NCBI GenBank assembly: GCA_964035545.1
Contig: CAXIUT010000036.1
Location: 24,287 to 75,803 of the forward strand
Length of the DNA stretch: 51,517 nucleotides
Origin: Bugula neritina
Lineage: Eukaryota; Animalia; Bryozoa
Direction of reading: 5' to 3'
In this document: positions 77 through 51,517 of the stretch, piece by piece
Position numbering within the stretch: position 1 is the first letter of the stretch
How the letters are laid out: each line of letters begins with the position of its first letter
Program-made: the position numbers and the translations under genes
Notes under the pieces: generated by a model
The model's input: the letters and a program-made list of their open reading frames with translations, nothing else
Database searches by the model: none
What the model was told of the DNA's origin: nothing

Positions 77-3000
77 GATCTAGATAGAAAATTATTATTA
101 GATAAATGATTAGATATAAATTGGATGTAAATATTAAAAATGTCATTAAATCGTTTATCAGATTATAATAATTGGTTTGATTTCTATTTGGATGTTATAT
201 TTGCTGAAGTATTTTCATTATCTGTTCAAAGACATCTTTAATAACTTCAAAAAAATAGCACTGAATGCTATCTACTAGTTACAGTTGAATTGTAGAGAGT
301 AGGTATTCTAAATGTCTTCTTAAAATCAAGAAGATTACGACATAAAAACAAACACTAGCCATTTAATAACTAGATTTATGATAGAAATAAGTATAAAAAT
401 ATAAAATGATTGTACAGTAGTTAAAATAACGATAAAGTTAGAAGTTAAAAATGAAAGCACATTCATATAAAATAAGTAATTAGATATTAAAAGCATAATT
501 TAAAACAATTTATGACTAAGCTACTGGATATTAGCCATTAATTCTAGTTTATATTTAGATCCGCAGTTCACAATATGCTCAAGATCATCAAAAATAGAAC
601 ATTGAAGTCATTATAATACAACTAAAATGAAAATCAATATAGTAATGGTAAAATAGAAATATTAATAATATAAAGATTACTTATGTTTATTGATTTGCTC
701 ATTTATTTTTCACATTTTTATATTTTAATGGTGAGAAGAAAGATTATTGATGGAAATATTATGGGTTAATAAAATAGTTGAAAAGATATTATGCTGACTA
801 GTAAATATACTCTTTATATTAATGAATATTAAATGATTAATTTCAGGTTAAAATATGGATTCTTCAACTTAGATATTATAAAAATCAAAAGTTCTTTCTA
901 AAAATACTAACAGCATTCTAGTTTATCAACTTTACTTCATTTATCACCAAGTTTATCACCACAATATCAAGCTTAAACAGGTCAAATATCATTTTTAGAT
1001 GAAAAGATATCAAGTAAGATGTATAATCAAATTGAAATGATCAATAACAAATAAATCTTGATAAACAATAACTAGATTTATAACTTGACAGTCAATATCT
1101 AGATTAATAACTCGATTGCTAATATTGTTGTTTTTTTATGATACTTTTGAGTTGTTTAACTTATGAACAATAAATAAAAGAAGAGATCAAAATTAATCAT
1201 AGAAATCATTTAATAATATAACTTCTTGGTATTGAGAACGAAATAAAATTTTAAATTATTTCTTCAAGTTGACATTCAATTATAATTTAACTTTGTGAAC
1301 TTTCCTCGTTATTATCATATTTATTTTTAGGATATATCCCCCATGATAACTAAAGGTCTTGTAAAAAACTAAATGCAGACATTTATCCTGGTTGCCAATC
1401 GATTCAGAGCTATCATGACTAGGACATAAATTGTTATTCGATAAAATGCACTAAATGACAAACACATCAAGATAAAATTCTCACAGACATCGGACATTAA
1501 ACATATTCGATAATCACTTTTCAGGTTTAGATGCTGGACAAGAAGGATAGCGCTAGCAGATAGTCAAGATACTGAAACCAGCATAACAAGATGAATCCGA
1601 TGGATATCAAGCCAACCACATCGAAAGGAATCAACCTAAAAATTATATTTTATCTTCAACTAAAGCTGTTTTATCTGCAAGTTGTACTTGTTACTCTTAA
1701 TTACCAGTAGTAAAACAACCAATACTGATTTATCCTTGGATCGTAGTTAAAAATTGATTTTAAGCTCTACACAATAGGAGTCCTGAGGTGTGGATACATC
1801 TAGTTTTACAAATTAATGTAGATATCTCTAACAATAACATCAACTAAATGAATAATCCTATAACTGATCTGTTCATTTATTGTTTTAATGTAGTTTTGTT
1901 AAAGAATGAGAGAATAAGGATTATTGTTAACATTTGAATAGGTTTGTTATATATTCTATTTATCTATTTACTATCATTCTGATAGTTTTTCCTCTTTTGA
2001 TTTGATATATTTGAGGATGACGACTTGACTTTTGATACTATTCATTATCTTGATTGAAGTTATCTTCTACTATGACAGTATTTGCTTCTTTTATTATGAT
2101 AAAAAACTTAAATCCAACTCCTTTTCTTTTGTTTTAAAGAAAGATCTTCCTCTCTTCTTCTTTTTTGTGTTAAATTTCCTCTATTTCTCTTCAAATTTTA
2201 TGTTTTCAACTCTTTTAACAAATTTATTTGTACTCTTCCAATAAACAGATCTCTTGGTTGGTTGATACTTTTAGCTTACAATGTGACATTTGTTCTTTGA
2301 TTTGGCTATCCTATTATTATTCTTCTTCCTTATTTTACTTTTATCCTTATCTGATTCACTCGTGCAATATAACCTTTACTAATCTATTCTATTTTCGTTC
2401 TTGTTTATTTTAACTTATATTGATATTATAAATCTTCATATTGACAAACTATTAATACATCTTCATTAATCCATATAATATTTCAATAACTTGATTAGAT
2501 AGTTAAAATAGATAACATTCAAACTTATTTACTTAAATATTTATTTATTGATAATTTAAAATAACAAATGAATGACGATCACTACCAAATCACTCTGAAT
2601 ACTTAGTATTCCACCACTTTAAACCTTTTATTTTAGGTTGCTCCAGAAAATGTTTTCCAGGTCTACTTATTGTCACAAATGTATTTATTATCTTCAGAAT
2701 TATAGGAATGACCTAAGTTTGCATAGGAAGAGTTATTATTATTGCATTGGTCAGATATGTAGAGATCATCATATCCAAATGTTGGACCATAGCTATTGTT
2801 ACAGAAAATTATATAATTTTGATGTTGACAAATCATTTTTTACTTTAAGTCCAACGACAGCAGAAAAGCTTCCTTTCCTGCATCACTTACATAATCAATA
2901 TAAACTTGGTTCCACTTGTATTTAGTATAGCCTCCAATAGTTTTACCAAACTCAGTTCTCACTAAAGTAAAAGTATGCTAGATGTTATCACATTTTTTAT

Positions 3001-3200
3001 GAAAAGCATATGCACTAAAACCATTTTCTGATCCTCTGTAGAGTAGCTATAACTTCTTTGGCTTTTTTAAAGCCTCCATCAAAAACAACTTTTGTTTTTC
3101 AACATCTTTATCTCTTTTCTTCAAGATTACTGTATCAAACTCAATAGAGGCATCTTTATCTCCTTTTTTTAAGATAACTGAGTCAAAATCATTTTGTAGT
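77..3200 (+). repeat. Segmental duplication, direct copy of ~19831-23180
   Basis: Collinear near-matches, e.g. gatctagatagaaaattatt (77) vs gatctagacagaaaattatt (19831) and atgataactaaaggtcttgtaaaaaactaaatgcag (1344 vs 21098), continuing through the TLDc domain. Confidence 0.9.
1320..1870 (+). pseudogene. Arrestin-like gene fragment with internal deletion
   Basis: Homologous to the minus-strand arrestin remnant at ~10630-11850, but lacks the ~200-nt SCCCCDQG segment and is frameshifted. Confidence 0.55.
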
Positions 3201-3763
3201 TTATCAAATAGAGTTAATTTAAACTATTTTATGGCTTCATTGAATTTTTTCATTTGTTTTTAGTAATCTCCAAGTAACTTTCTTATTACTTCTTAGTTTT
3301 TATTACTTTTACTTAGAGTTAAAACTTTACCAAGCAATTCTTTTGCTTCTTTTCCACTAAGACATTTTCCATTGATGTGATTAAAAATCTCTTGGACTAA
3401 TTTTTGGTTTTTAACATCAAGATTTCTGAAAGGCGATCCTTTGATAAACTTTTGTTAGTTTTCTTTGAAAGTTTCTATGAAGTTGTTATCGATTTTTAAA
3501 ACTCCATACATTAGATCTTTGTTATTATCGATCATCAGATTCAGGTTCTTAGTAAGACCAACCAAAGGACTCGACTCAGCTTCTTGAGAATATTCTGAAC
3601 ATGCACTGCAAGTAGGGTTAGTGCAGATCAAAGAGTTAGGACAAGCTGGATCAGTGCACATTCTTTCGATTTTATTTCCTTGAGGACACTTGAGGTTGAT
3701 AGGTTCTTTGAGGTAACTTTGGTTGAGGAGAGCTTGTATTTACTAGTCTCTGACTGGTTCCAT
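2579..3763 (-). CDS. TLDc family copy A: Cys-rich (B-box-like) + coiled coil + TLDc, 394 aa
   Basis: Intronless 1185-nt ORF with TAR=Glu: MEPVRDEE...KCPQGNKIERMCTDPACPNSLICTNPTCSAC...LLYRGSENGF...FHKKCDN...GKTIGGY...GPTFG...FKVVEYEVFRVIWE-TGA. Canonical TLDc motifs. Confidence 0.92.
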
Positions 3764-6898: not shown

Positions 6899-7321
6899 TC
6901 ATTGATTTAACTGTTAGACTAGTCTTTGATTTAACTGTTAGACTAGGATAATTGGCCTCTGCAACTCCTATTTGTTAATCAACCCGTCATCAGAATCATC
7001 AATCACCTTAAAAGCCTACAAGTACACCCTCTCACTGCGATTAGCTATGATCTTAGGAGCAACTAACTATAAAAATTAAGTAAAATCAATAAATCCATTC
7101 CCGTCTTTATCGATCTGACTGATAATCAACTGCAACTCCTACTCCTGAAGAGTCTGGCCTAGTGTCTTAAGTATCTGGTCGAATTACTATCATAGATAAT
7201 CAAGTACTCGAATAGAAATAGATCCAGAACCGTCTTGATCGAATATCCTAAAAGCTTGCTGGGCCTAGAACTACTCCTTGCGAGTTAGATACTTACGCAT
7301 TGAATGTTTGACCTCGTACAT
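6899..7321 (-). pseudogene. Truncated calmodulin/centrin-like copy (3 EF-hands, aberrant C-terminus)
   Basis: Near-identical to 24758-25130 including the 21-nt intron. It diverges after ELQR into a tandem duplication (ctagtctaacagttaaatcaa x2) and TGA, losing the fourth EF-hand region. Confidence 0.75.
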
Positions 7322-8539
7322 CTAAGAATATTGGAATCGATGTTTAAAATAATATAGAAATCAAGTAGAAAAACTCACATCCCCTAAATATCTATTTAAT
7401 CAGACAAGAATAATAAATGAATCTTAAGCTTAGTATTATAGATCTCTAATTGAATATTACTTCTATCATAAAATCAATATTTTTAACATAATTATTCGTC
7501 TTACTAGCATTATAACAGTACTATTTGGAACTTCTTTTGAAAGTTATTTAGGTTATTTATTTTCTATGAGAAGATTAATAGCAGATAAAATGATATCTAC
7601 TGTCAGATCTATTAAAATGGTCAACTTGGAAAGATTATTATCATAAATTATGAAGATTGTAATCAATACAGTTTTATCTATCAAATGGCTAGCATAAAGT
7701 TATAAATTGTCTTTTTTCAGCACCTATATTGATAAATCACAGACTACAATCTTAGAATCGAAGTTTTATTGACTGCAACAAGATAAAAACAACAAAAAAT
7801 AGTTTAAAAAGTTGAAACAAGGTCTATTAGTATGTTGTTGATCGTAATTGATGATAAAAATATTATGTAAATCATAAATATCTCGATTAAAAGTTGGTTT
7901 ATTGAAGAATAGATGGCATTATAAGAGAAAAGAGAGTTAGTTATGAAATATAGTTGTATTTTAATAAAAATATATCGTTATCAGAATAGTTTAATATTAT
8001 TAGAATCCTTATTATGTTGAATATAAAGAATATGATGAAGACCTTCATTGAAGAAAGCTAGATTTCAATTTCAATATTTTTTGAAGAAGTTTAGACCGAA
8101 TAATTAGACTACTATATTTTAGTAAACATCAATAGTTATTGAATTAACACTATTAGAATAAAAATTAGTTAATAAATTGAAAAGATAGTTATGTTGACTA
8201 CACAAAGAAGTCAATAAGAAGAAGAAAAAGTATAAAGATATGAGTTGATTGATCAAGATGATGATTAAGTAAAGTAAACATATTTTTGGTTGGTTTATTA
8301 TTTAATATATATTTAACTCATATTGTTCTTCTTGATCAATCGAGTATTAGTGTATTTTAAATAGAAAATTATTTAAATCTATTATCAAGCATGATCATAT
8401 GTTGTATCGAAAGTTATGCATGTTGATTAGATCGTGAAGAGTTATCCATCTTTGAGGAGATAGTGGGTATTTTATTTTTAAACTTCTTGTTTCTCGACTA
8501 CTATCTTACTTATATTGGGTATCGTAAATAATCAGAATT

Positions 8540-8611: not shown

Positions 8612-9796
8612 ATGTAAAGAGTTAAAGACTAAGATTTTCAAGCTATCAATCAGGCATACCTCAGAATGCCTACTGACCTTAAGTGTCCTTAAGGTAATAA
8701 AATAGATAGAATCAGTACAGATTCTTCTTGTGAAAATGCTCTGATATGTTCTGATTACTAATGTATATCATGTTCAGAATATTCTCTAAAAAAAAAATCT
8801 ATTCCTTTATTTGGACTCACTAAAGGTCTCAATGTTATGGTTGATAACAATAAATAACTGATCTAGAGATCACTTAAGATAGATAATGATTTTATTTAAA
8901 CTTTCAAAAAAGATCAACAGGAGTTCATAAAAATATCTCCTTTCAAAGGACTTTAAGAGAAATACATACAAATTATCCAGGAAATATTTACAAAAGTTAA
9001 TGCTAAGTGTTTGAGTGGAAAATAAGCAAATTAACTTCAAAGTAAAGTGTTTTAGTTGAGTAAAAGCAACAAAAAACATGAAGGAATGAATCAGTTACTT
9101 GAAGACTATTCAAAACAAATGAAAAAATATTGTGACGCCATCAAAGAATTCAGGTAGACTATATTTAATAAACTAAATAATGATTTTAATCCAGTTATCT
9201 TAAAAAAAGGAAACAAAGAAGTTGATGATGACTTTGATTCAGTTATTTTGAAGAAAGGAGATAAAGATGTTGAACAACAAAAGTTGTTTTTGATGGAGGC
9301 TTTAAAAAAGCCAAAGAAGTTATAACTACTCTACAGAGGATCAGAAAATGGTTTTAGTTCATCTGCTTTCCATAACAAATGTGATAACATCTAGCATACT
9401 TTTACTTTAGTGAGAACTGAGTTTGGTAAAACTATTGGAGGGTATTCCAAATACAAGTGGAACCAAGTGAATAGTAATTGGGTAAGTGATGCAGGGAAGG
9501 AAGCTTTTCTGCTGTCTTTGGACTTAAAGTAAAAAATGATTTGTCACAATCAAAATAATATAATATACTGTGACAATAACTATGGTCCAATATTTGGAGG
9601 TGGGAGTGATCTCTGCATATCTGACGAATGCAATAATAATAACAAATCCTTTGCAAACTTAGGTTGGTCCTATAATTCTGAAGATAAAAAATACATTTTC
9701 AATAATAAGTAGACCTGGAAAGCATTTTCCGGAGCAACCAATAGTGAGAAGTTTAAAGTGGTTGAATACTAAGTATTCAGACTGATTTGGAAGTGA
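8612..9796 (+). CDS. TLDc family copy B, 394 aa
   Basis: Intronless 1185-nt ORF with TAR=Glu: MERVKDEDFQ...LLYRGSENGF...GPIFGGGSDL...VVEYEVFRLIWK-TGA. Confidence 0.93.
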
Positions 9797-9949: not shown

Positions 9950-10630
9950 CGAATATCAACAAATAGGTGATGCATTTCTAACAGTAAAATATTGATGAAG
10001 ATTCAGTTGGTTTTAGATAGTATTAGAAGGCTCATATCAATAATATTAGAATAAATAAATCAGCTACTACATATATTGCTAAATAAATCAGTTAGCATAT
10101 CAAATAAAGATAATAAATCAACTAGTAACAAGCCATTAAATCAAAAGTAAACAAGAAGAAAATAAAATAGATTGATATCAGTTATATTACAAGGAGAAAG
10201 AATCTAATTATATAAGAAGAATAGGAAAGTAGAAGAAGACCAATATCAGATCAAATAGAAGTGCAAATGTTAGGATTTTAAGTTAAAGGTATCAACCAAG
10301 AGATCTGTTTCAGGGAAGGGTGACAAAGAGCACAAATAAATATGTTAAAAGAATTGAAAAAAGGACTGTAAAGATAGATAAAAGATAGTTAATAGCAAAA
10401 AAGGAAGAAGAGAGGAAGACCTTCAAAAAAACAACCAAGTATTATCATAGTAGCAGATAACTTCAATCAAGATAAACAATTAATATCGAAAGTAAAGTAG
10501 TTATTGTCAAATACATCAAATCAAAAGAGGACAAACCATCAGAATGATAGCAAATAAATAAGAAAACAAAATCAAAAACCTATTCAAAGGCCAGAATAAC
10601 CCTTATTCCCTCATTCTTGAACAAAAATTA
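9950..10630 (+). pseudogene. AT-hook-containing gene remnant (copies ~1900-2450 minus, ~15560 onward plus, ~21660-22400 minus)
   Basis: 10396-10431 reads QKRKKRGRPSKK (AT-hook core RGRP). Frames are interrupted by TGA and indels, and the copies differ. Confidence 0.5.
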
Positions 10631-11850
10631 ATCATAAACTAACAGATCAGTTCAAAGGATTATTATTCATTTGATTGATGTTATTGTTAGAGACATCCAA
10701 GTTGATTTGTAAACTAGCCATTATGATTTCAGTTGTGTAGAACTTGGAATAAACTATTAACTGGAATCGATTTATCAGTATTGGCTGCTTACTACTTGAT
10801 AACTAAGAGCAACAAGTACAACTTGCATATAAAACAGCTCACACCTGAAGATAGCATCTACTTTTAGATCGATTCCTTTAGATGTAGTTGACATCCATTA
10901 GATTGTTATGTTGGTGCAATGTTCTAACTCCTTGCTGGCACTATCATTCTTGCCCAGCATCTAAACCAGAAAAGTGATTGTCGAATATATTTAATGTCCG
11001 ATGTCTGTGATGATTCTATCTTGATATAAAAGTTATTTCGTTCTTTAGGGCTACTGTTACTCTTTAGACCTTTGTTTTCCTTATTTTTTGTTAACTACAC
11101 AGTATATTTTGGCATCTTATCCTGGTGCATCTCCATTTTCTAGAAAAAATATTGAACTCTGGTTACGCCTTGATCACAGCAGCAACAACTCTTACTAACA
11201 GTAGCAACAACTCTTAATTGTTTATCATTGCGAAGAGGTGCAATTTATCGAATAACAACTTATGTCTTAGTCTTGATAGATTTGAATCGATTAGCAACCC
11301 AAATAAATGCCTGCATCTAGTATTTGATAAGACATTTAGTTATCATGTGATCTATCCTAAAAATAATTATGATATATACTAGGAAGATTGCTAGTGTTAT
11401 CCTGTTTTGAATCTGAATGGAAAAGAGTATTGTCCTGGTAGTCTTAATAATCCACCAAAATATAGAGAAGAAGATGTAAGAATCTGGCAATGATTCTACC
11501 TCCTGAATATCTTTTTATCTATATGATGTCCCTACCTCTTTTGATATAGTTAAATTTCATCGACTAGTCATTGACCTATCCATCTTATGAGTCAGAACTT
11601 TATATGTGGACTCGGTAGGCGTTATGCCAGATCATGTTGGCTTGCAATCTGTTTCTTTAATTGTACGCAAGAACTCTTTTATTCTATTCATCTATTATGA
11701 CTATTTTTGAGTTTAACTGTGATGTCGTTAGCGTTGACTGGTTATACTAAATAGAGAGATAGACGTGGCCTTCGAGCATTTATCCTACAAAGTCAAATGA
11801 TTTGTTGAATTGGGTGAATGCTGAGGAGATCTAGATATGTTGTGACTAAT
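10630..11850 (-). pseudogene. Arrestin-domain protein, frameshifted
   Basis: Motifs spread over several frames: FVGEMLEGHVYLSI, LPGQYSFPFRF, VVIREIAP...SKSCCCCDQGVTRVQYFFEK. These parallel the intact arrestin-like gene at 34562-35694 (EGVVFI, AGRYAYPFS, FIREP, CGCCSQG). Confidence 0.7.
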
Positions 11851-13559
11851 ATTATTATTTGATTATATTTCTAACAAAGTCATAAATATCTCTTCTATCT
11901 TGTTAGAACTTAATAAATGATAGTACTAGATAGCATAATTATTATTTTTATGATAGAAATAAAATATGACTTACCTAGATTTATTATTATCTGATAAATA
12001 ACTATATTATTATTTGATAAAGAACTACATTCTCATCTGATAAACAACTTTATTACTGAAGTAAGTCAAGAGTAATATAAACATCTCTGATTATCTCCTC
12101 ATCCATTTGAAAACCAGAAGTCTTTTATTTATAAAAAAAATATGGCGCCTAAATTATACTTTATCATAAGTTAGTCATTGATCATAATTGTATATGATAA
12201 CTTATAATTTATAAATCGTGATAAATATCCAAAGATAGTACATCCTTTCTACTACTTCACTTAACACCCAGTCGGTCAGATCACTTGAAGTTGTAAGATA
12301 GAGTTAGAACTAACAAATAAACGATGTCCGAGTCAAAAATAAACAGGTGAGTAAAAACATAATCAACATCTATTTACACATAGGTCACTGACATCAATGA
12401 AAATGAACCTTTTGACAGGCTGTAGGAGAAATTATTGAAGAGCAACTATCAAATGTAGTAGAATTGCAATGGTTTGGTAACCAATTTACTTTCTGATATT
12501 CAAGAAAATAGTCACATAGAAGAAATAAAATAAACACTAGCAACCAAGCAAACAGGTTTATTATTTAGAAATAGTTACAAAAAGATAAAATAAAAATAAA
12601 GTAGCCAAAAACAACTTGAAAAAAAAGTTAACAATGACTAATATAGATGAATGGAGTAAGATCTATTATAAGGTTTAAGAAGTAGAAATATTAAGGATAG
12701 TCAGATAGTTATCCTTGACTTAATCTCTGATGTATTAAAAAACTATCTAAAATTACTTCATAAATAACAAATCAATTTTTTGAAGTTGGAGACCTATTCT
12801 TCAAACTGCAACAAATAAGATAATAAAATAGATATTGATAAAAAGGATGTTAATAAACAGACAAATAAACAGCTAGTCAACAAATTATAAAAAGGACCAA
12901 ATAGATATCACAAATGGAACCTATAGATGACAACTATAATAAGATATAAACCAAGTTTCAGATAACAAGAATGTGATTCTTGTCAGTTATTTTGGGTTAA
13001 AAGTTGAAAGAAGGGTAAGATCAAAGATTAGCAGTCTCAGAACAACTTTCAATAATAAAATAATAATAGAGTCTATTAGATATTCTTATTGGATATGTAA
13101 GTGGAGTAGATACAAATATAGAAGAAGATAAGTCCAGTTCATTGATATTAAATAACTTTGAAGCACAATGGATCATTTAGGATTAGATACACCAAAAATC
13201 ATAACTTTGTTCTAAATATAACAACTATTTACCACTTGATTATACTCAACTTTCTTTCTAAAAAGATAATAAATCATTAACAGATCTTAGGTCAACTATT
13301 TTATTCAACGAAATTGGAAAAGATCAGTGAAATACATCAGTATGAAAACTAGAAATGGAAGAGGTTATCTAACTACCTATAGAAATTAGTATTAGTTATT
13401 TAATAGAGAGAGTCTTATCAAGAATTAGAGAAGAGAGATTAGTTGTTTTAAGTTATGTTTATTTATGTGGAGATCATGAGTGAACTTTATAGAGGACTAT
13501 ATTTAGTATTCAGGATCTATCATAGTAAAATTCAATAGCTTAATGTACTACTAATAATG

Positions 13560-16170
13560 GCTCTTTGAAGTGATTGTTTAACCTTCAATCGACTAATATC
13601 AAAGGCTGAATATTATTTGAATCATTGTTAAGTTGACTCGAAAGGATATGGCATTTGTGGATTTCAGATTTTAGACCTTGATAGAAAAAAATTAGACTTT
13701 GCTTTGGATTATTTTAAAAGAAGTTAATACTCAATAATATTTTAGTAGATATGAATAGTTAGTTAGCACTATTAGACAAATATAATAAAAAAAAGTAGTT
13801 TAGGAATTGAGATGATAGTTAGGTCAAATTACATGAAGAAATCAGGATAAGAAGAAAGAGTTGAAGGTGATAGTTGATTGAATAAGATAATATAATTGAG
13901 AAAAGTAAATATATTTTTTGATTGGTTTGTTATTAACATATCTAACTCATATTCTTCATCTCAACAAAATAGTATTAGTGTCATTTAAGTACAAATGATA
14001 TTTAAATATTATCATCTTATGCTGTATTGATAAGTCATACATCTTTATTAGATCATGAAGAGTTTTCATCTTTGAATAGATCAAAGGTATTATGTACACG
14101 TTCTTCTTTCTGGTTGACTATCTGATTATTTTTATTGGTAGTTTACATAGTTAGTCAGAAATAGTAAGATAAATTAGCAAGAATTATTATATTTGTACTT
14201 AAATCGTACTTGATACTGCAAGGTTTATAAAATAATGTAACCAATCAGAGACGAAGAGCTTCAAGCTCTAAGCCAGGCATACCTCAAAATGCCTATTGAC
14301 CTTAAGTGTGCTTAAGGTAACAAAGTTGATAAGATGTGTTTGGATTCTTCATGTGCCAATGCTCTTATCTGCTCTGACTACTAGTGTAAGTCATGTTCTG
14401 AATACTCTCTAAACTATCAGGCGATTCCTTTATTTGGACTAACTAAAAATCTTAATACTTTGGTCGATAACAACAAGGAAATGATCTATGGTTCATTGAA
14501 GATAGATAGGGACTTCATTCAAAATTTTAAGTAAGATCAAATGGATTTCATCAAGAGGTCTCCCTTTAAAGGACTAGAAGAGAAATAAAGATATATTATC
14601 CAGGAAATATTTACAAAGGTTAATGCTAAGTGTTTGAGTGGAAAATAAGCAAACTAACTTCAAAGTAAAGTCTTTTAGTTGAGTAAAAATCAGAAAGAAC
14701 ATGAAGGAATGAATCAGTTGCTTGAAGACTATTCAAAGCAAATGAAAAAATATTGCAACGCTATCAAATAGTTCAGGTAAACTTTTTTCAATAAACTAAA
14801 TAATGATTTTAATCCAGCTATCTTAAAAAAAGGAAACAAAGAAGTTGAGGTTAATTTTGATACAATTATTTTGAAGAAAGGAGATAAAGATGTTGAGAAA
14901 CAAAAGTTGTTTTTGATGGAGGCTTTAAAAAAGCCAAAGAAGTTGTAACTACTCTACAGAGCATCATAAAATGGTTTTAGAGTATCTGCTTTTCATTAAA
15001 AATGTGATAACATCTAGCATACTCTTACTTTAGTGAGAACTGAGTTTGGTAAAACTATTGGAGGCTATACTAAATACAAGTGGAACCAAGTGAGTCATGG
15101 TGATTATGTAAGTGATGCAGGAAAGGAAGCTTTTCTGCTGTCTTTGGACTTAAAGTAAAAAATGATTTGTCACAATCAAAATTATATAATATACTGTAAA
15201 AATAACTATGGTCCAACATTTGGAGGTGGAAATGATCTCTAAATATCTGACCAATGCAATAATAATAACTATTCTAGAGCAAACTTAGGTCATTCCTATA
15301 ATTCTGAAGATAAAAAATACATTAAAGGCAATAAGTAGACCTGTAAAGCATTTTCTGGAGCAACCTAAAATTATTATTTTAAAGTGGTTGAATACTAAGT
15401 ATTCAGAGTGATTTGGTTGTGATTGTCATTCATTTGTTATTTGTAAATAATCAATAAATAAGTATCAAAGCAAATAAGCATAAATATGATCTATCATAAC
15501 TATTAAAAAAAGTATTTTGATATCATAATCATGATGATGATGTACTGATAGTTGTATTTGTTAAGATTGTCTTCTACAAATAAATTATGTATTTCATACA
15601 ATTAAACATTAATAAAGATTCTGTTGATTTGGGATAGTATTAAGAGAGATGGGTCAGATCAATAATATTTTAGAAATAAATAAACCAATTTTTACCAATA
15701 TGGTTAAATGCATTAATTAACAAATCAAACTAAGACAACAAATCAACTAGTAATCAACAATTAAATTAAAAGTAACAAGAAGAAACATTAATAGATTAAT
15801 ACTAGTTATATCAATGGGAAAAAGAATTAGATTAATAAAATATTGAGAAAGAAAAAAGAAAAAAGGAAGAAAACCTAAAGGAAGTTCAAAGAGAAGAACA
15901 AATAAAAGCAAAATGTTACATTTTAAGTTAAAAGTATCGACTAACCAAGAGGTCTAATATCTCATGGAAGGAGTGTAAAGAGGACAAATAAATATGCAAA
16001 AATAGTTGAAACCATAAGATTTGAAGAGAAATAGATGATAGTCAACAAAAAAAAAGAAGAAAAGAGAAGAAGACCTGAGGAAAGGAACTATATTCAAGGT
16101 TATCATCAGAAAAGAAGCAATTATTATCATAGTGAAAAATAGTTTCGATCAAGATAAACATTTAATGCCA
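13560..16170 (+). repeat. Segmental duplication unit around TLDc copy C (upstream spacer + TLDc + AT-hook remnant)
   Basis: Upstream matches ~7980-8610 and ~49530-50100; downstream matches ~9800-10480. Confidence 0.8.
14235..15422 (+). CDS. TLDc family copy C, 395 aa
   Basis: Intronless 1188-nt ORF with TAR=Glu: MEPIRDEELQ...LLYRASENGF...GPTFGGGNDL...VVEYEVFRVIWL-TGA. Confidence 0.93.
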
Positions 16171-17400: not shown

Positions 17401-17612
17401 TTGAATCAGATAATAGAGGCAACTATTAGTTAACTCTCATGAAATTATTTTCTACCATTATTAGTTTCAAAACTGATACTTCAAGTCATAGTTCTCGAGT
17501 GATAGAAAATATAACATTTTTGGATCTTTATCATGATTTATAAATTATAAGTTATCAAGAGCAAATACTGACTAATTTATGATAAGTATCAATATATTTA
17601 ATTCTTATTAAA

Positions 17613-18791
17613 ATGTCGAAAGAGACATAAGTAAATAACTTCTAAACAATTTCAACAATCTGATCGTTAAAAACCTAATAATTATCTTTGTCAAAAAGGA
17701 AACAAGATCTAAAAATTGTGCATCAACTCATAATGTAGCAGATCGATAGGTTACAATAACTCTGAATGTTAAACTTGTGGAATAAAGACTCATCCTTAAT
17801 GTTACCATGTTGCTTTTGGTTAAATAACTAATCTTATCAACAAAAGAATCAAATGCTTTCAACATTTAACTCTGAATATCTTTGAGATCGAAGATACTTT
17901 TATCAGCAAAATTATCTAGAGTAGAAAATAGCTAAAAATATAAATTAAATGATTTGACATCTGAAGAACAAAATATTATTGAAGAAATTTACAAAAAGAA
18001 CAACAGTTAGTTCTTGGATGGAAGAAGTGCCTAAAAGTTTTTTAACAATCTGAAGTTGTACAATAAGAATATCAGCACAAATAGTGGAGAAGTGTTGAAT
18101 AGATATCGAATTGAAATGAGTTAACTAGTTGAGAAAAGTAATTGAGATTAAGTAAAAGTTTTATCAATAATTTAAAAGAGAAATCAGCCAAAAATAAAAG
18201 AAAAATGTTATTGAAAAGCAAGTAAATAGTAAAATGCCAAAGTTGGATTCTAAAATAACAAAAAACTTCAAGTAAAACTAAATCAATTTCTTGATGTGCT
18301 TAATTATCCAAAAAAAAATAGAATTGGTTTATAGAGGTTCAGAAAATGAGTTCAGAGCTAAGGCTTTCATTAGAAGTGCAAAAACATTGAACAAACTTTG
18401 ACTTTGGTGAAAACTGAATTCGGAAAAACAATTGGCAGCTACTCCAAATACAAATGGAATTAAGTTGCTGATGGTCATAGGGTAAACGACGCAAAGAAGG
18501 AAGCCTTTATTTTTTCACTAGATATGAAGTAGAAGATGACATGTCAAAACTAAAATGGACAATAATTAATTGGATATAACACTAATTATGGTTCATGGTT
18601 CGGATATGATGACCTTCAGCTTGTTGATCAGTGCAATAATAACAGTAATTCCTTAGCTAATTTCTCTAACACATACAATTAAGAAGGTTCCAACAAGTAT
18701 GCTAACAACCAACAGAGCTACAGCCTTTTCAGGAGCAACCAATGGCAAGAACTTTCGAGTAGTTGAATACTAGGTGTTTCGAGTGAGGTGA
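17613..18791 (+). pseudogene. TLDc family copy D (distant paralog, multiple frameshifts)
   Basis: LCQKGNKIEKLCINSEC...CETCGIKTHPECYH, LVYRGSENEF, LTLVKTEFGKTIGSY, GSWFGYDDL and FRVVEYEVFRVR-TGA lie in different frames, needing at least five frame changes. Confidence 0.85.
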
Positions 18792-21074: not shown

Positions 21075-21640
21075 ATTATTTTTAGCAAAAAATCGCATGA
21101 TAACTAAAGGTCTTGTAAAAAACTAAATGCAGGCATTTATCTGGGTTGCCAATCGATTCAGAGCTATCAAGACTAAGACTTAAGTAGTTATTCGATAAAA
21201 TGCACTCAAGAAAGAAATAAAATCACATTTACATCAAGATAGAATCATCACAGACATTGGACTTAAACATATTAGATAATCACTTTTCTGGTTTAGATGC
21301 TGGACAATAAGGATAGCGCTAGCAGATAGTCAAAATACTGAACCAACATAACAAGATGAATCCGATGGACATCAAGCCAACCACATCGAAAGGAATCAGC
21401 CTAAAAATTATATTTTATCTTCAACTAAAGCTGTTTTATCTGCAAGTTGTACTTGTTGCTCTTAATTGCCAGTAGCAAAACAACCATTACTGATTTATGC
21501 TTGGATTTCAGTTAACAATTTACTCCAAGTTCCAAACAATTTGAATCCTGAGGTGATGGATACAGCTAACTTACAAATCAACATGGATGTCTCCAACAAT
21601 AACATCAACTAAATGAACAATCCCTACAACTGATCTGATA
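21075..21640 (+). pseudogene. Arrestin-like gene fragment with internal deletion
   Basis: Homologous to 1320-1870 and to ~10630-11380 (minus); lacks the Cys-rich segment. Confidence 0.55.
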
Positions 21641-22560
21641 GTTTATTGTCTTTAAAGTTTTTGATAAAGAAAGAGGGAATAAGGATTATTATTAACACTA
21701 GAATATGTCTGTTATTTTGAACTAGAATATGTCTGTTATTTTGTTACTTATTTATTTACTATCATTTTGATAGTTTTTTCCTCTTTTGATTTGATGTATT
21801 TGATAATGACTACTTGACTTTCGATACTAAAGGCTTACCTTAATTGAAATTATCATCTACTGTGATAACACTTGCTTCTCTTTCTGATGATAAACTTGAA
21901 TACCACTCTTTGCCTTTTGTTTTTATGAAAGGTCTTCCTCCTTTTTTGCTATTAACTATCTTTTATCTATCTTTACATTCCTTTTTTATCTCTTTCAACA
22001 TATTTATTTGTGCTCTTTATCGCCCTTCCCTGAAATAGACCTTTTGGTTGATATCTTTAACTTAAAATTTGACATTGTAATTATATTTGCTCTGACTTCG
22101 GTCTTCTCCTACTTTCCTATTCTTCTTACTTTCTTTATTCCTCTATTAATTAGATTCTTTCTCCTTGTGATTAAACTTATATCAATCTCTTCTATTTTCT
22201 TAAGGCTTGTTGCTTGTTGCAAGTTGCTAGTTGCTTTATTGTTTTAATTTTGATATACTAACTGATGTATTTAGCAATATAGATAGTAGCTGATTTATTT
22301 TATTCCAATATTATTGATCTCATCCATCTAGCACTATCTTAAATCAACCTAATCTTCATCAATATTTTACGATTAGAAACGTACAGTTTATTTGTTGATA
22401 TTCATCTTAATAACTACAACTATCAATATATCACTTAATTGATTTACGATATAATATCTTGAATAGCTTTTTATGATAGCTATTACTTGATAAACCATTT
22501 TAAAATTTATTTACTTTGATAATATTTATTGATAATTTACAAATAATAAATGAATGACAA

Positions 22561-23739
22561 TCACTTCCAAATCACTCTGAATACTTAGTATTCAACCACT
22601 TTAAACTTATAATTTACAGTTGCTCCAGAAAATGCTTTCCAGGTCTACTTATTGCCTTAAATGTATTTTTTATCTTCAGAATTATAGAAACGACCTAAGT
22701 TTGCATAGGATTCGTTAATATTGCATTGGTCATTTATGTGGAGATCACTACCTCCAAATACTGGACCATAGTTATTGCTACAGTATATTATATGATATTG
22801 ATCTTGACAAATCATTTTTTATTTTAAGTCCAAAGACAGTAGAAAAGCTTCCTTTCCTGCATCACTTACATCATTATTATTCACTTGGTTCCACTTGTAT
22901 TTAGTATAGCCTCCAATAGTTTTACCAAACTCAGTTCTCACTAAAGTAAAAGTATGCTAGATGTTATCACATTTATTATGAAAAGCTTTTGCACTAAAAC
23001 CATTTTCTGATGCTCTGTAGAGTAGTTACAACTTCTTTGGCTTTTTTAAAGCCTCCATCAAAAACAACTTTTGTTGCTCAACATCTTTATCTCCTTTCTT
23101 CAAGATTATTGTATCAAAATCATCATCAACTTCTTTATCTCCTTTTTTTAAGATGACTGAGTCCAAGTTATTATTTAGTTTATTAAATATAGTTTACCTG
23201 AATTCTTTGATGGCGTTGCAATATTTTTTCATTTGTTTTGAATAGTTTTCAAGCAACTGATTCATTCCTTCATGTTTTTTGTTGTTTTTACTCAACTAAA
23301 ACACTTTACTTTGAAGTTAATTAGCTTATTTTCCACTCAAGCATTTAGAATTAACTTTTGTAAATATTTCCTGGATAATTTGTCTGTATTTCTCTTCTAG
23401 TCCTTTAAAAGGAGACCTCTTGATGAACTCCATTTGATCTTACTTAAAATTTTGAATGAAGTCCCTATCTATCTTCAATGAACCATAGATCATTTCCTTG
23501 TTGTTATCGACCATAGCATTTAGATTTTTAGTTAAACCAAACAAAGGAATCGCCTTATAGTTTAGAGAGTATTAAGAACATGACTTACACTAGTAGTTAG
23601 AGCAGATAAGAGCATTGGCACATGAAGAATCCAAACACATCTTATCAACTGTGTTACCTTAAGGACACTTAAGGTCAATAGGCATTCTGAGGTATGCCTG
23701 GCTTAGAGCTTGAAGCTCTTCGTCCCTGATTGGTTACAT
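22561..23739 (-). CDS. TLDc family copy E, 392 aa
   Basis: Intronless 1179-nt ORF with TAR=Glu: MEPIRDEELQ...LLYRASENGF...GPVFGGSDL...VVEYEVFRVIWK-TGA. Confidence 0.93.
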
Positions 23740-25258: not shown

Positions 25259-25461
25259 TATCAATAGATTGTTATACTGTTTATTACTTTTATGTTTTGG
25301 AGGTAAATGAATAGAAGTTATGGAAATCGTAATGGTTTATATTTGATTAAATATCTCTAAATAGTTGATAATTTATATCGAATATTGTTATTCTTGATAT
25401 GAAATAATATATCATAAAGTAATTCTCATATATATTTATAATAGTTTCTTATAAAACAAGT

Positions 25462-26745
25462 ATGAATACAGATGATAGTATCACCATTAAACTCAAATAG
25501 TTATAAGTAAGGTTACAAAAGTGTTGTAATAAGTCTAATAACAGTCCTCATCTCCAAACAACTCATAAAAAAGGTACTTATACATCGGCTGGTTAACATC
25601 ATATTGTGTAAAATACTGAAATTGGATAAATCATATAAGAAATCAATCACAAAATAAGTTAGAATAGCAAGTGCTAAAGTCAATTTGAAGAAATAAAGAG
25701 ATAAATTGACAAGTTGTACAAGAAGATGTCATAAGTATATGAGGAATTGTCAAGGAAATAAAAGTTGATAGTCGAATATTCCTCAAAAATAGAACAACTC
25801 AATAAGAAAGTAGCCGAACTATAGAAGTCAAACAGATAAAAAGGAAGATAGCTTCAAAGATTACAACAATAAAAAGAAAGTAATGTCGGTTCAAAAAACA
25901 ATCTTTCCCATAAATTATCATAAATTATAGCTAAACTTCAATAGTTGTAAGTCTACAGACGTGGAATGCCAGATTTGTTGAAGTTGTAGCTATCAAAACT
26001 ATCAAAAAATTGGAAGGAATCGTTTACTAGCCTATCAAAAGTCATAAGCAATAAGTAAGCAACTCACAAAGAACAAATCCAAGCGTTTGAACTAAGACAG
26101 AAGAAGATGCAGGACTAGTTGCTTTATCTTTCAAATATGTAGATCAAATAGAAGATTACTTACTAGTAGCAATCAGATTATTTCTCATCGGCTATGACTC
26201 AGTATATCAACTACGGATCGATATTTGCTAGTTCTGAAATCATTGCGTAACTTGGTCATAAATAGTGGTTGTCAAAACATCTGAGGTTGTTGTTGGGAGG
26301 GGTGAAGATATCGACGAAATTGCTGTATCGATTCGATGCGTTGAATCCGACCAATTTCCATAAGTATATCGATGGCAGGTAGAATATATTTGTGTTGGTT
26401 AGATTGATAAATGGGTATGTTATTGGTGGGTATTGTCATACTCCGATATAAAAAAATCGTATGGACCGGCATAAGAAGGGCTTTCTCTTTTCTTTGACTC
26501 AGATGCATCAGTATTTACCTAAGTAGTAAACTAACCAGCCTTTGGTGACCTATGATGATTTCTTTTTGATTATGGGCAATTCTTAGTTGCGGATAAAGAG
26601 TCAGGAGAAGAAGGTGTATAGTAATTTCGGGGTAAATAGTGGAACATTTAATTCTAGAGGCGAGAAGACTATGTAGTTTTTGGGTACCAAGAATAGTTAA
26701 ATTGAGTTATTGAGTTATTAGATCTTTTAGATATGTGTTAAATGA
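25462..26745 (+). CDS. Coiled-coil + divergent TLDc protein, 427 aa (not part of the repeated family)
   Basis: Intronless 1284-nt ORF: SSEII...KLLYRFD...NFHKYIDG...NGYVIGGY...GFLFSL...MGNSELRI...SYEIFEI. Confidence 0.85.
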
Positions 26746-42405: not shown

Positions 42406-44997
42406 ATGTCATTTTATCGTTCAGACTAAACATCTTTCTTCAAGTTAGTTATACCTAGGGAAAATGCATGGGATATAATGAATGAATTAGGTAACTTTTC
42501 TTCTGATTTTAGGTCAACAGAAATTGATACATATTGTTCCATCATTAACACCTGCATTATCAAGACCATTTTATCAACATATAAGAAGATGTGAAGATTC
42601 TTTAAATCGATTAAATGGATTATAAAAATTATTAGAAGAGAAAAGAATCTTTAAAAGAAGAATAGAATTTCCTTAACAAGCATATCATGAATTGTTTAGA
42701 TTATGGTAATAACAAGCAAATAAAAATGGTGGACATCCTTCTAATATATTAAATGATATTATTGGTTAAATTGATCAAGCATGGAGTTATTATTAAGATC
42801 TAGTTAAAAGAATAGATTAATTATCAAAAAAAAATCAAAAATATAGAGATAATTTAGCTTTATTAAAAGCTGGAGAATAACATTTTGGTCGTGATTTTTT
42901 TACTATTAAAGATAGAGTTCAAGATCAGAATTATTCTTTATTATCAGGTTCAAAAATAAATTATAAATGTGGTGTAATAAATATAAATGATTCTTTAAGA
43001 TTTAAACGTACTATTTTTAGAATAACAAAAGGAAATTCTATTGTAACTACAATTCCTTTTGATAAAATATATACTAATCCTTTATAAGAATAAAAAACAA
43101 GAATGGCTTTCTTTGTATTATATCCTGGTAATATATAAGATAATTATCTTGAAAAAAAATTAACTAAATTAATATAAAATTTAAGTTAATGTAGTTTTTA
43201 ATTACCAAGTAATAATCAATAATATATACGTATTAAAAGTAATATAGAAAGTTAAATGGTTTAAAGTTAAAATTTATTATTAATGACATAAAATTAATTA
43301 AAAGAATTTCTTTAAAAATTAGTTGATCCAATGAATAATAGTTAATATTATAGACGTCATGAATATTTGAAATTATATCTTTTGAAATAGAAATAATTAT
43401 ATAATAATTTAAATGAAATGTAAATTTATAATAACTTTATGCAAGGTAATATTTATATAAGAAAATAAGATATAAGTTTATTACAAAAGATAATGAATGA
43501 ATTATAAGAAAAAATTAAACAACCTGTAGGACATATACTACCTGCTTATTCAGATAATTATCCAACTCATTTTACTACTAATGCTTATACATGTTCAGCT
43601 CAAGAAATAGTATAAACTTATGGAATACCTAATTATCAAGAAGCTAATCCAGGATTCTTTACTGTTATTACATTTCCTTTCTTATTTGGTGTTATGTTTG
43701 GTGATATGGGACATGGATTAATCTTATTTAGTTTTGGATGCTTGATGATTTTTGGTATTAAATAAAATACAACTAATCCTGTTTATAAAATGCTTAGACC
43801 TCATAGATATATGATAACTTTAATGGGTTTCTTTTCTAGTTATTGTGGATTAATCTATAATGATTATTTATCTATACCAATTGATTTCTTTGGTTCATGT
43901 TTTGATCCTACTGATATCTAACCAAAACAACCTATACCTGGTGATCCTAATTGTATCTATCCAATAGGTTTAGATCCAGTTTGGGCAATAGCATAAAATA
44001 ATCTTAATTTTCTTAATGCTATGAAAATGAAAATAGCTGTTATAATAGCTGTAACACATATGACTTTAGGTATTTTTATTAAAGGATCAAATACTATTTT
44101 TTATGGTAGAATTATTGACTTCTTATTTTAATTTGTACCACAACTTATTTTCATGGTTTTATTATTTGGTTATATGGATTTTTTAATTATTTATAAATGG
44201 TTAATACCTTGGGGTTATAATTCACCAGAAGCACCATCAATTATTACTACCATGATTAATATGCCTTTAAAATTAGGAGCTACTGTAATTTATATTATTA
44301 TTATAGACTCCTTGTTGTTCAGGTGGACAACCTATGTGGGGATAATATGGTAATACATCTCAAGATAAAATTCAATTAATCTTTTTAATAATAGCTGTTA
44401 TTTGTATTCCATTAATTTTATTTCCAAAACCATTATTTTAAATTCTATGTAAAAGTCATAAACCTAAAGAATAAATATCTTAAAATAATACAAATCGTTT
44501 ATTATAAAGTGATTAAAATATTGAACAACCATAATCATGTTAGTTTGTTAATAATATAGCTAAAATAATAATAAAAAAAGAAGAAGAACATGATGCTAGT
44601 TAAATCTTTGTACATCAATTAATTTAAACTATTTAATATGTCTTAGGTTGTATTTCTAATACTGCTTCTTATTTAAGATTATGGGCTTTATCATTAGCAC
44701 ATTCACAATTAGCATAAGTTTTCTTTAATAAAATTGTTTAATCTGGTTTTATTTCAGGTTATTCTGGAATACCAATAGTATTTTTGTTGATATTTATAGA
44801 TGTTAATTGGTTTTATCTTTTTAGCTGGAATCACTTTTGGAGTATTATTATGTATGGATGTTATGGAATGTTTCTTACATACCTTAAGATTACATTGGGT
44901 TGAATTCAATAATAAGTTCTATAAAGGAGCTGGATTCCTATTTGTCTTCTATAACTTCAAAAAAAAATTAAGTACAGATATCAATCTTGATAACTGA
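42406..44997 (+). CDS. VPH1: V-type ATPase V0 subunit a (Vph1/ATP6V0A family), 841 aa; introns 42491-42512, 44285-44306, 44778-44799
   Basis: [107 protein letters not shown]. Confidence 0.97.
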
Positions 44998-50102: not shown

Positions 50103-51347
50103 ATGTAAGAAATTAGAGACGAAGAACTTCAAGCCCTCAATCAGGCATACCTCAAGATGCCTGACAACCTTAAGTGCGCTTAAGGTAATAAAATTGAGAA
50201 GATCTGCCAGGATTCTTCATGTGCCAATGCTCTAATCTGCTCTAACTACTAGTGTAAGTCATGTTCTTAATACTCTCTAAACTATCATACGATTCCTTTA
50301 TTTGGTTTAACTAAAAATCTAAATGCTTTGGTTGATAACAATAAATAACTTATATAGAGTTCACTGAAGATAGATAGGGACTTCATTCTAAATTTTAAGA
50401 AAGATCAAGAGGAGTTTATAAAGAGGTCTCCTTTTAAAGGACTAGAAGAAAAACATAAGAAAACTATTTAGGAAATCTTTACAAAAGTTAATGCTAAATG
50501 TTTGAATGGAAAATAAGCTAATTAGCTACAAAGTAAAGTGTTTTAGTTGAGTAAAAACAACAAAAAACACGAAGAAATGAATCAGTTACTTAAAGACTAT
50601 TCAAAACAAATGAAAAAATACTGCAATGCCATCAAAGAATTCAGGTAAACCTTACTTAGTCAAATATGTATTGATTTCGATTCAGTTATCTTAAAAAAAG
50701 GAGATAAAGATGTTGAACAACAAAAGTTGTTTTTGATGGAGGCTTTAAAAAAGCCAAAGAAGTTGTAACTACTCTACAGAGGATCAGAAAATGGTTTTAG
50801 TGGAAAAGCTTTCCATAACAAATGTAATAACATCTAGCATACTTTTACTTTAGTGAGAACTCAGTTTGGTAAAACCATTGGAGGGTATTCCAAATACAAG
50901 TGGAACCAAGTAGAATATGGTCATGTAAGTGATGCAGGAAAGGAAGCTTTTCTGCTGTCGTTGGACTTAAAGTAAAAAATGATTTGTCACAATCAAGATC
51001 ATATAATATAATGTAACAATAACTATGGTCCAATATTTGGAGTAAATGATCTCTGCATATCTGACCAATGCAATAATAATAACGAATCCTATGCAAACTT
51101 AGGTGATTCCTATAATTCTGAAGATAAAAAATACATTTGTGGCAATATGTAGACCTGGAAAGCATTTTCTGGAGCAACCTAAAATTAATATTTTAAAGTG
51201 GTTGAATACTAAGTGTTCAAAGTGATTTATGAGTAAAAATAAAAATACGAATAAAAATAAGCATCTAAATAAGCATCTAAATAAAATAAAAAATAAGCAT
51301 CAAAATAGAAATAAAAATCAGATTGTCCAATCTGTCAAATCTATTGA
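50103..51347 (+). CDS. TLDc family copy F, 414 aa, with charged C-terminal extension ending CPICQIY
   Basis: Intronless 1245-nt ORF; single DFDSVILKKGDKDV linker; ends ...VVEYEVFKVIYEEKEKYEEKEASKEASKENKKEASKEKEKSDCPICQIY-TGA. Confidence 0.9.
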
Positions 51348-51421: not shown

Positions 51422-51517
51422 GGGGTTGGGGTTGGGGTTGGGGTTGGGGTTGGGGTTGGGGTTGGGGTTGGGGTTGGGGTTGGGGTTGGGGTTGGGGTTG
51501 GGGTTGGGGTTGGGTTG
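51422..51517 (+). repeat. Right terminal telomere (GGGGTT)n
   Basis: Tandem TTGGGG to the end of the window. Confidence 0.97.

Follow-up and report, generated by a model that had tools for sequence, protein, structure and literature searches.

The question raised by this locus is how one protein domain can be held almost alike across a set of neighbouring genes while short patches within it differ strongly from gene to gene. The stretch analysed here (the window) comprises 51,517 nucleotides, positions 24287-75803 of contig CAXIUT010000036.1 (C45 below) of the Bugula neritina assembly GCA_964035545.1, and represents the terminal 51.5 kb of this telomere-capped contig of 75.8 kb. It carries an array of genes whose products end in a TLDc domain, which is otherwise regarded as a conserved, low-copy regulator of the vacuolar proton pump (V-ATPase). 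In the explanation that we consider probable, the array is tandem and partly subtelomeric and consists of eight genes and one dead copy; their TLDc domain is homogenised, its patches are under diversifying selection, and the patches would form a variable ligand-binding surface. The same explanation takes the proteins to be cytosolic.

A DNA search of the whole assembly found that the TLDc copies with DNA 86-90% identical to copy B number eight, all of them on C45. Three (G1, G2 and G3) are situated upstream of the window and five (A, B, C, E and F) within it, together with a pseudogene (D). The encoded proteins measure ~390-420 amino acids, and the copies are separated by 5-27 kb, each in unique flanks. 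The window contains the following elements of the array:

2579..3763, minus strand: copy A, TLDc module at 2585-3052, N-terminal class common to G1
8612..9796, plus strand: copy B, 394 amino acids, 68 bits on the Pfam profile PF07534, with a Cys-rich N-terminal motif, a helical middle and a C-terminal TLDc
14235..15422, plus strand: copy C, TLDc module at 14943-15416
17610..18790, plus strand: copy D, of the G2/G3 class, a pseudogene that carries four or more frameshifts and a TLDc ~66% identical to the live copies
22561..23739, minus strand: copy E, TLDc module at 22567-23031
50103..51347, plus strand: copy F, telomere-adjacent, TLDc module at 50763-51230
51425..51517, plus strand: (GGGGTT)n telomere, a macronuclear chromosome end

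TGA as the sole stop, with TAA and TAG as sense codons, is the only setting that gives long reading frames in the window. In paralog alignment columns TAA/TAG stands opposite GAA/GAG 15 times and opposite CAA/CAG five times; Glu is therefore favoured, as in the peritrich code (table 30), which was used for translation. The key results also hold under table 6. With TAA/TAG read through, the eight live copies score 61-70 bits on PF07534 (TLD; cut-off 24.5) over profile positions ~4-151 of 170, and pseudogene D scores 31.9 bits; the stop-free pieces alone reach just 13-17 bits. Going by this profile, the window proteins belong to the TLDc domain family PF07534.

A preliminary description of the window had named five intact paralogs with an invariant framework. 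The five open reading frames exist at exactly the coordinates given for them with TGA as the only stop, but the homogenised copies number eight, and copy F is intact only through a frame that runs past the lost TGA stop of the family (TGG AAG TGA changed to TAT GAG TAA), continues for ~20 codons into A/T-rich 3' flank and ends 78 nt short of the telomere. Alternatively, a TAA close to the mRNA end may serve as the stop in this copy. The framework is highly alike but, at the overall identity given above, not strictly invariant. Since the TLDc of copy D is only ~66% identical to the others, this copy escaped homogenisation or decayed, and it provides a gauge of TLDc drift once homogenisation or selection ends. 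Copy G1 (C45 ~7290-8515) shows an extra A in an A-run, A7 instead of A6 (locus L012 ~1830-1850), which shifts the frame over the last ~35 TLDc codons and is either a homopolymer sequencing error or the mark of a very young pseudogene.

What the preliminary description had missed is that the near-identity of the framework arises from homogenisation of the TLDc across genes with very different N-terminal halves. In a sliding comparison of the five window genes and their flanks, nucleotide identity was ~76% over the first ~210 codons, stepped up to ~95% at codon ~211, where the TLDc starts, dipped at the patches and dropped to 55-60% immediately past the stop codon. The TLDc module comprises ~160 codons and the homogenised 3' portion ~480-540 bp; in copy B the homogenised block starts at ~9251 and the module extends over 9320-9790. 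By their N-terminal halves, the eight genes fall into three classes, (G1, A), (G2, G3) and (B, C, E, F), between which these halves can barely be aligned. The tree of these halves has internal branches of 0.4-1.4 substitutions per site with support of 85-100% on most, whereas the TLDc tree is star-like, supported at 26-62% and in conflict with it. Proportions of synonymous (pS) and nonsynonymous (pN) differences were calculated for each pair by the Nei-Gojobori method:

Pairs between N-terminal classes: N-terminal pS 0.71; TLDc framework pS 0.131 and pN ~0.03; hypervariable codons pN 0.42 and pS 0.17
Pairs within an N-terminal class: N-terminal pS 0.41; TLDc framework pS 0.119 and pN ~0.03; hypervariable codons pN 0.43 and pS 0.22

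The TLDc module thus does not share the age of the genes that carry it, which is the mark of concerted evolution through gene conversion or module spread. Across all eight genes the TLDc-coding 3' portion is held alike, probably by gene conversion or by repeated replacement of the module.

Within this homogenised module, variation is concentrated at few codons. Among 158 TLDc codons aligned across the eight copies, 102 encode the same residue throughout, 27 show two residues and 29 at least three, nine of the aligned codons showing five or six. The 29 hypervariable codons, with three to six residues each, lie in seven patches, which have the following positions in copy B (all on the plus strand):

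9350..9376: patch 1, GF-xxx-AFH-x, straight after a G-F pair that aligns with mEAK-7 Gly276/His277
9470..9487: patch 2, WNQV-xxxx-VSD, a loop ahead of a strand with a codon-sized indel, aligned with mEAK-7 Pro316/Gln317
9545..9580: patch 3, MIC-xx-Q-xx-II-x-C-x-N-x
9590..9622: patch 4, GP-x-F(G)G-xx-DL-x-IS, with a codon-sized indel
9632..9670: patch 5, NNNN-x-S-x-ANLG-x, variable positions alternating on a strand, then a loop
9698..9703: patch 6, KYI-xx, six residues among the eight copies
9740..9751: patch 7, GAT-xxxx-FK, an inserted loop relative to database relatives

The seven patch strings quoted in the preliminary description were recovered letter for letter under table 30, and the alignment bears out the multi-base changes and the codon-sized indels (alignment columns 338, 340, 380 and 392) that it had listed. 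Often a single codon is changed between unchanged neighbours, and third positions vary too. Of the residues in which it had called the patches rich, Tyr, His, Asn, Asp and Gly are indeed enriched at the hypervariable codons, as is Ser, but Trp is not (1.7% in the patches versus 2.2% in the framework). The third positions of these codons are pyrimidines in 72% of cases (NNY), compared with 52% in the framework. A related TLDc gene stands beside a kinesin gene in another ciliate and was found in several samples (loci L042-L046, ENA metagenome contigs ERZ272681xx). Eight variants of this gene at 90% identity or more have 19 variable columns, nine of which coincide with hypervariable columns of the array (hypergeometric p = 0.005, with the columns mapped by hand), a hint of independent support for the patches.

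Site models were fitted with our own GY94 implementation, using F3x4 frequencies and optimised branch lengths, and the log-likelihoods (lnL) of models M1a and M2a were compared, ω denoting the ratio of nonsynonymous to synonymous rates and ω2 its value in the selected class:

Table 30, maximum-likelihood tree: M1a lnL -1650.9, M2a lnL -1626.3, 2ΔlnL 49.2, ω2 5.6 at 14% of sites
Table 30, star tree: M1a lnL -1677.0, M2a lnL -1649.9, 2ΔlnL 54.2, ω2 5.0 at 15% of sites
Table 6, maximum-likelihood tree: M1a lnL -1653.3, M2a lnL -1627.6, 2ΔlnL 51.4, ω2 5.6 at 15% of sites

Under table 30 and the maximum-likelihood tree, 15 sites had a posterior above 0.9; ω of the whole domain was 0.66. At 0.42, hypervariable pN is roughly threefold the framework pS (0.12-0.13); it also lies above the neutral divergence of the youngest pairs, as N-terminal pS is 0.18 and hypervariable pN 0.34 for G1-A, and 0.21 and 0.46, respectively, for C-E. 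Hypervariable pS is just 0.17-0.22, so these codons are not simply older than the framework but change their amino acids faster. Because the patches had been picked by eye and recombination inflates site tests, a neutral simulation was added in which every codon evolved at ω = 1 along eight independent lineages (star) with pS matched at 0.14, and the 29 most variable codons were picked in each of 200 replicates. The picked codons had a mean pN of 0.29 and a maximum of 0.33 (observed 0.42); columns with at least five residues numbered 1.3 on average and four at most (observed nine), and invariant columns 41 on average (observed 102). None of the 200 replicates reached the observed values. The diversifying selection proposed in the preliminary description is upheld by the codon site models (2ΔlnL 49-54, ω2 5.0-5.6), with which the pairwise and simulation checks agree, and diversifying selection on a constrained, homogenised TLDc framework can be called well supported by these comparisons.

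The same data bear on relaxed constraint as the sole cause, in which the patches are neutrally drifting surface loops, purifying selection and conversion maintain the framework, and no recognition function exists. The patches do fall mostly in loops of the fold model described below, ω of the whole domain stays below 1, and recombination can give false positives in likelihood-ratio tests, more than half of the informative site pairs within the TLDc module (53%) being incompatible. However, neutral loops cannot outpace synonymous sites, be it those of the framework or those of the hypervariable codons themselves, and the neutral simulation never reached the observed values even though it picked the most variable codons. 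Conversion of the flanking codons would also wipe neutral differences in patches of 3-30 nt, and the youngest pairs are already 34-46% different at nonsynonymous patch sites. This alternative is accordingly regarded as improbable, and diversifying selection is retained as the preferred reading of the patches.

Where the variable residues lie in the protein was assessed through database relatives. The layout of the window proteins is a short Cys-rich, zinc-finger-like N-terminal motif, which is preceded by ~20 residues, a predicted helical region of ~130 residues and the C-terminal TLDc. The 78-amino-acid stop-free piece of G3 has 394 relatives in a library of 1.84 billion representatives (identity up to ~60%), and two proteins were found with it in a further search for family members. 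One relative, P0135 (376 amino acids), has the whole layout, including the N-terminal motif LKC-x-G-x-C-x-DP-x-C-x-C; as the closest relative with the full architecture, ~35-45% identical, it stands in for the window proteins in the structure models. Its TLDc part (residues 205-376) was modelled with the window stop-free pieces as alignment rows and reached a predicted local distance difference test score (pLDDT) of 95.7. All 16 matches of this model in the PDB with E < 0.01 are TLDc domains (template modelling score 0.64-0.78); they include 4ACJ, 7OBP, 6R82, 7U8O and 7FDE, with scores of 0.65-0.78, and NCOA7, Skywalker, mEAK7, Oxr1p and Rtc5p are represented among them. The predicted structure is the TLDc fold, a beta-sandwich with flanking helices as in 4ACJ. 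The full-length model adds small N-terminal beta-hairpins and long helices at residues 73-203 (pLDDT 55-73), the N-terminal and helical parts as a whole being of low confidence (pLDDT 35-73). The 94-amino-acid N-terminal piece of copy A has no Pfam match at E <= 1, and the three stop-free N-terminal pieces of copy A (residues 9-238) yielded neither a RING nor any other Pfam match. On zf-B_box (PF00643), two relatives come close to the cut-off of 24.1 bits without reaching it, P0086 with 20.9 and P0004 with 24.0.

On the P0135 model the hypervariable columns would lie mostly in loops and at strand edges: at the start of the first long helix, in the loop after a conserved Trp, in a loop and a short helix ahead of the YGP motif, in the turn that follows this motif, at alternate positions of two strands (370/372 and 396/398), in two more loops and in the inserted loop that precedes the final strand. 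Where mEAK-7 is in complex with the V-ATPase, Gly276/His277 of its TLDc contact subunit B1 and Pro316/Gln317 contact subunit A (PMC9263379). In the profile alignment Gly276/His277 fall on the G-F pair immediately before patch 1 and Pro316/Gln317 fall inside patch 2; the mapping covers the first half of the TLDc, the further contact residues Tyr341, Thr354, Tyr367 and Lys384 being situated in the second. As patches 1 and 2 overlie contact positions of mEAK-7, the family may have converted the V-ATPase-binding face of the TLDc into a variable recognition face.

The same overlap could be explained by diversification towards intracellular partners, with the paralogs tuned to V-ATPase isoforms or to organelles such as the phagosome or the contractile vacuole and the face still binding the V-ATPase. 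All characterised TLDc domains bind this enzyme (PMC9263379, PMC12139955). Its subunit a is encoded on the same chromosome, and the ciliate contigs of the assembly hold at least four a-subunit genes. Yet mEAK-7 contacts subunits A, B and E in a manner described as isoform-insensitive (PMC9263379), and an ω of ~5 with 34-46% nonsynonymous divergence in very recent duplicates is unexpected for matching slowly evolving housekeeping subunits. Linkage to one a-subunit gene among the ~20 genes of the chromosome may be chance. We give this explanation little credence, about as little as relaxed constraint.

A targeted mutational mechanism with selection in a secondary role, either in the germline or during macronuclear development, appears still less probable. 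Retro-homing of the kind seen in diversity-generating retroelements (DGRs), deaminase hotspots and scars of imprecise DNA elimination were considered under this heading, as the patch changes are multi-base and sharply bounded, the third positions are skewed towards pyrimidines, and the building of a macronucleus in ciliates involves DNA rearrangement. Whichever copy serves as template, its A positions account for 25-39% of the mismatches, compared with an A content of 37% in the sequence; the mismatches show no adenine bias, and a DGR-like mechanism is therefore rejected for the patches on the base spectrum. The patch variation keeps codons and frame and often affects one codon between invariant neighbours, and hypervariable synonymous divergence is about half of the nonsynonymous, where a pure hotspot would make the two equal. 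No template repeat was found, the sole extra TLDc-like DNA being pseudogene D and a 66% match of 272 nt, and no C45 site is among the 150 best-scoring matches to RVT_1 (reverse transcriptase) in the assembly, for which 150 of 2192 candidates were scored, a set swamped by the retrotransposons of the animal-like genome. The targeted mutagenesis that the preliminary description had offered beside selection thus fails in the single form tested, both for want of an adenine bias and because synonymous change at the hypervariable codons stays below nonsynonymous change.

An assembly artefact, in which collapsed or mis-polished repeats create false differences, is barely credible: although the contig stems from a mixed-organism assembly, G1 carries an error-like homopolymer change of +1 and the window is overlaid by assembled contigs rather than raw reads, each copy stands in its own unique flanks, every patch difference is in frame and creates no TGA, and contigs from public runs carry paralog-specific patch variants, such as the TGG GAC of G3 aligned to B 9699-9703. 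These public data are short contigs assembled from four runs; at 90% likeness the paralogs map onto one another, and the letters that differ over copy B are letters of paralogs. Some of the contig pieces match the intergenic DNA without any difference, and one run may be the source sample; the support that these data lend to the assembly is weak.

Several points weigh against a homogenised TLDc array under diversifying selection as set out here. The PHI test within the TLDc module found no distance-dependent incompatibility (p = 0.78), and conversion is read from the contrast between N-terminal halves and TLDc rather than from mapped tracts. Recombination would inflate the likelihood-ratio tests of the site models, a problem countered only by the star tree, the pairwise statistics and the simulation. 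The dataset consists of only eight sequences from one assembly, and no public RNA run matches the window stretch. The fold model depicts the database relative P0135, at ~35-45% identity, rather than a window protein. The window proteins are also unmatched by zf-B_box, no C45 site being among the matches from the 150 candidates scored, of 312 in the assembly.

With these points considered, diversifying selection on a homogenised TLDc remains the explanation that we favour, and its steps may be envisaged as follows. The TLDc module is homogenised among the eight genes despite three saturated N-terminal classes, and ~25-30 patch codons change their amino acids several times faster than synonymous sites, under positive diversifying selection. 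The variable residues would jointly form a ligand-binding surface specific to each paralog, while the constant N-terminal and helical parts could supply oligomerisation or output, akin to B-box/coiled-coil proteins with a variable C-terminal domain. The ligands would likely be fast-evolving factors of a parasite, symbiont or virus; viruses or endosymbionts as the targets of the patches, which the preliminary description had suggested, are speculation. A more far-reaching version, put forward as tentative and in itself unlikely, sees the array as an intracellular, germline-encoded repertoire of innate-immune type in a ciliate, in which a constant chassis of finger and helical region carries a TLDc whose one-time V-ATPase-binding face now acts as a hypervariable sensor or decoy for parasite, symbiont or viral factors directed at the vacuolar proton pump. 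A good framework would then be spread by module conversion, and selection would keep the binding faces of the paralogs distinct. That extra diversity is added somatically in macronuclear development is a bolder and purely speculative extension of this repertoire.

Comparison with known systems shows which parts of the array are familiar. Canonical TLDc proteins are few per genome, two in yeast and six in human, and bind the V-ATPase via conserved regions (PMC9263379, PMC12139955). Members such as OXR1, NCOA7, TBC1D24/Skywalker, mEAK7, TLDC2 and the yeast proteins Oxr1p and Rtc5p have the same domain, C-terminal in most of them (PMC12139955) as in the array, which differs from them by its eight tandem copies, its hypervariable codons, two patches on mEAK-7 contact positions and different N-terminal modules. 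The statement that TLDc proteins are low-copy, made in the preliminary description, needs to be qualified, as expansions in ciliates have been published for Paramecium bursaria and Tetrahymena utriculariae (PMC7702705, PMC11834939), with TLD in 22 of 30 members of one orthogroup (PMC11834939). These expansions, likewise lineage-specific multiplications of TLDc in oligohymenophorean ciliates, were explained as a means of tolerating the reactive oxygen species of algal symbionts; unlike for the array, no site-specific hypervariability, concerted evolution, tandem or subtelomeric arrangement is reported in the two papers (PMC7702705, PMC11834939). Our literature search returned no paper joining TLDc with positive selection in the sense used here. 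IFI44 is listed among the human TLDc proteins (PMC12139955). IFI44 and IFI44L are interferon-induced, immunity-linked TLDc proteins and show that the fold is used beyond classical V-ATPase housekeeping; the TLDc of IFI44 is N-terminal and joined to other domains. We know of no hypervariable tandem repertoire of IFI44.

Outside the TLDc family, TRIM5alpha and TRIM22 offer the closest parallel in layout, with a small Cys-rich module, a long helical region, a C-terminal beta-sandwich, few positively selected surface patches and an organisation in tandem families. They possess a B-box, a coiled coil and variable SPRY loops, whereas the array has no SPRY, no RING in the pieces of copy A that were scanned and no zf-B_box match, and its likeness to TRIM proteins is one of analogy, not membership. 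Plant NLR (nucleotide-binding leucine-rich repeat) and MHC (major histocompatibility complex) families share with it an exchange that homogenises the framework, hypervariable exposed positions that are kept different, and variable positions that alternate on beta-strands. Such alternation is seen in the xxLxLxx motif of leucine-rich repeats. These families differ from the array in fold and organism; homogenisation in the array spans one whole domain and stops at a sharp border. The constant scaffold, the clustered variable codons favouring NNY and the patches rich in Asn, Tyr, Ser, His, Asp and Gly recall DGRs, from which the array differs in its mismatches without adenine specificity, the variation of its third positions, its eukaryotic host, the lack of any template repeat found and the RVT_1 result for C45 given above. 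A homogenised framework combined with selected hypervariable contact codons is classical for families of the NLR, MHC and TRIM5 types; the TLDc as scaffold for such a family appears to be new.

The window, with a GC content of 20-35%, is part of a ciliate macronuclear chromosome with the peritrich genetic code. In the assembly, which totals 216 Mb, the multi-megabase contigs C1-C9 use the standard code and contain thousands of reverse-transcriptase open reading frames and intron-split TLDc and V-ATPase genes, whereas small telomere-capped contigs give ciliate-code matches with TAA/TAG read as Glu; this split in code and gene structure identifies the contig as a macronuclear chromosome of a ciliate whose DNA was assembled together with an animal-like genome. 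Downstream of each of the copies B, E and A stands, in convergent orientation, a second gene or pseudogene that belongs to no recognisable family, and since it was duplicated along with these copies, the duplication unit is a gene pair of ~2.5-2.8 kb. Just upstream of the homogenised block, at window positions 9180-9273 and equivalent sites, a 48-nt tandem duplication repeats the linker motif DFxxVILKKGxKxx, whose copy number varies among the paralogs (three in G1, one in F). Apart from the array, the following features were noted in the window, the last three of those listed having been named by eye from their translations:

1466-2411, plus strand: second gene or pseudogene, downstream of A
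10144-12106, minus strand: second gene or pseudogene, downstream of B
21097-22076, plus strand: second gene or pseudogene, downstream of E
25399-26745, plus strand: open reading frame of 448 amino acids outside the homogenised set, its first half helical and coiled-coil-like, its tail distantly resembling a TLDc (LLYRFDALNPTNFH...GGY...FLFSL); no match listed in the PF07534 scan
42929-44958, plus strand: gene for subunit a of the V-ATPase (PF01496, E = 1e-117), containing 24 in-frame TAA/TAG codons
39446-41047, minus strand: ankyrin-repeat protein with a DHHC motif, palmitoyltransferase-like
46115-47980, minus strand: multi-pass membrane protein, called ALG6-like in the preliminary description
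48055-49386, minus strand: multi-pass membrane protein resembling sterol reductases of the ERG4/ERG24 type

The array offers ~25 named codons, eight variants that occur naturally on a single small chromosome and a testable link to the V-ATPase-binding face. It points to the recognition of fast-changing ligands as a role for a domain that has been regarded as a conserved, low-copy V-ATPase regulator. If this is true, the TLDc would be a new scaffold on the short list of eukaryotic variable-recognition folds, and the array would provide a case in a protist, where cell-autonomous immunity is poorly known.

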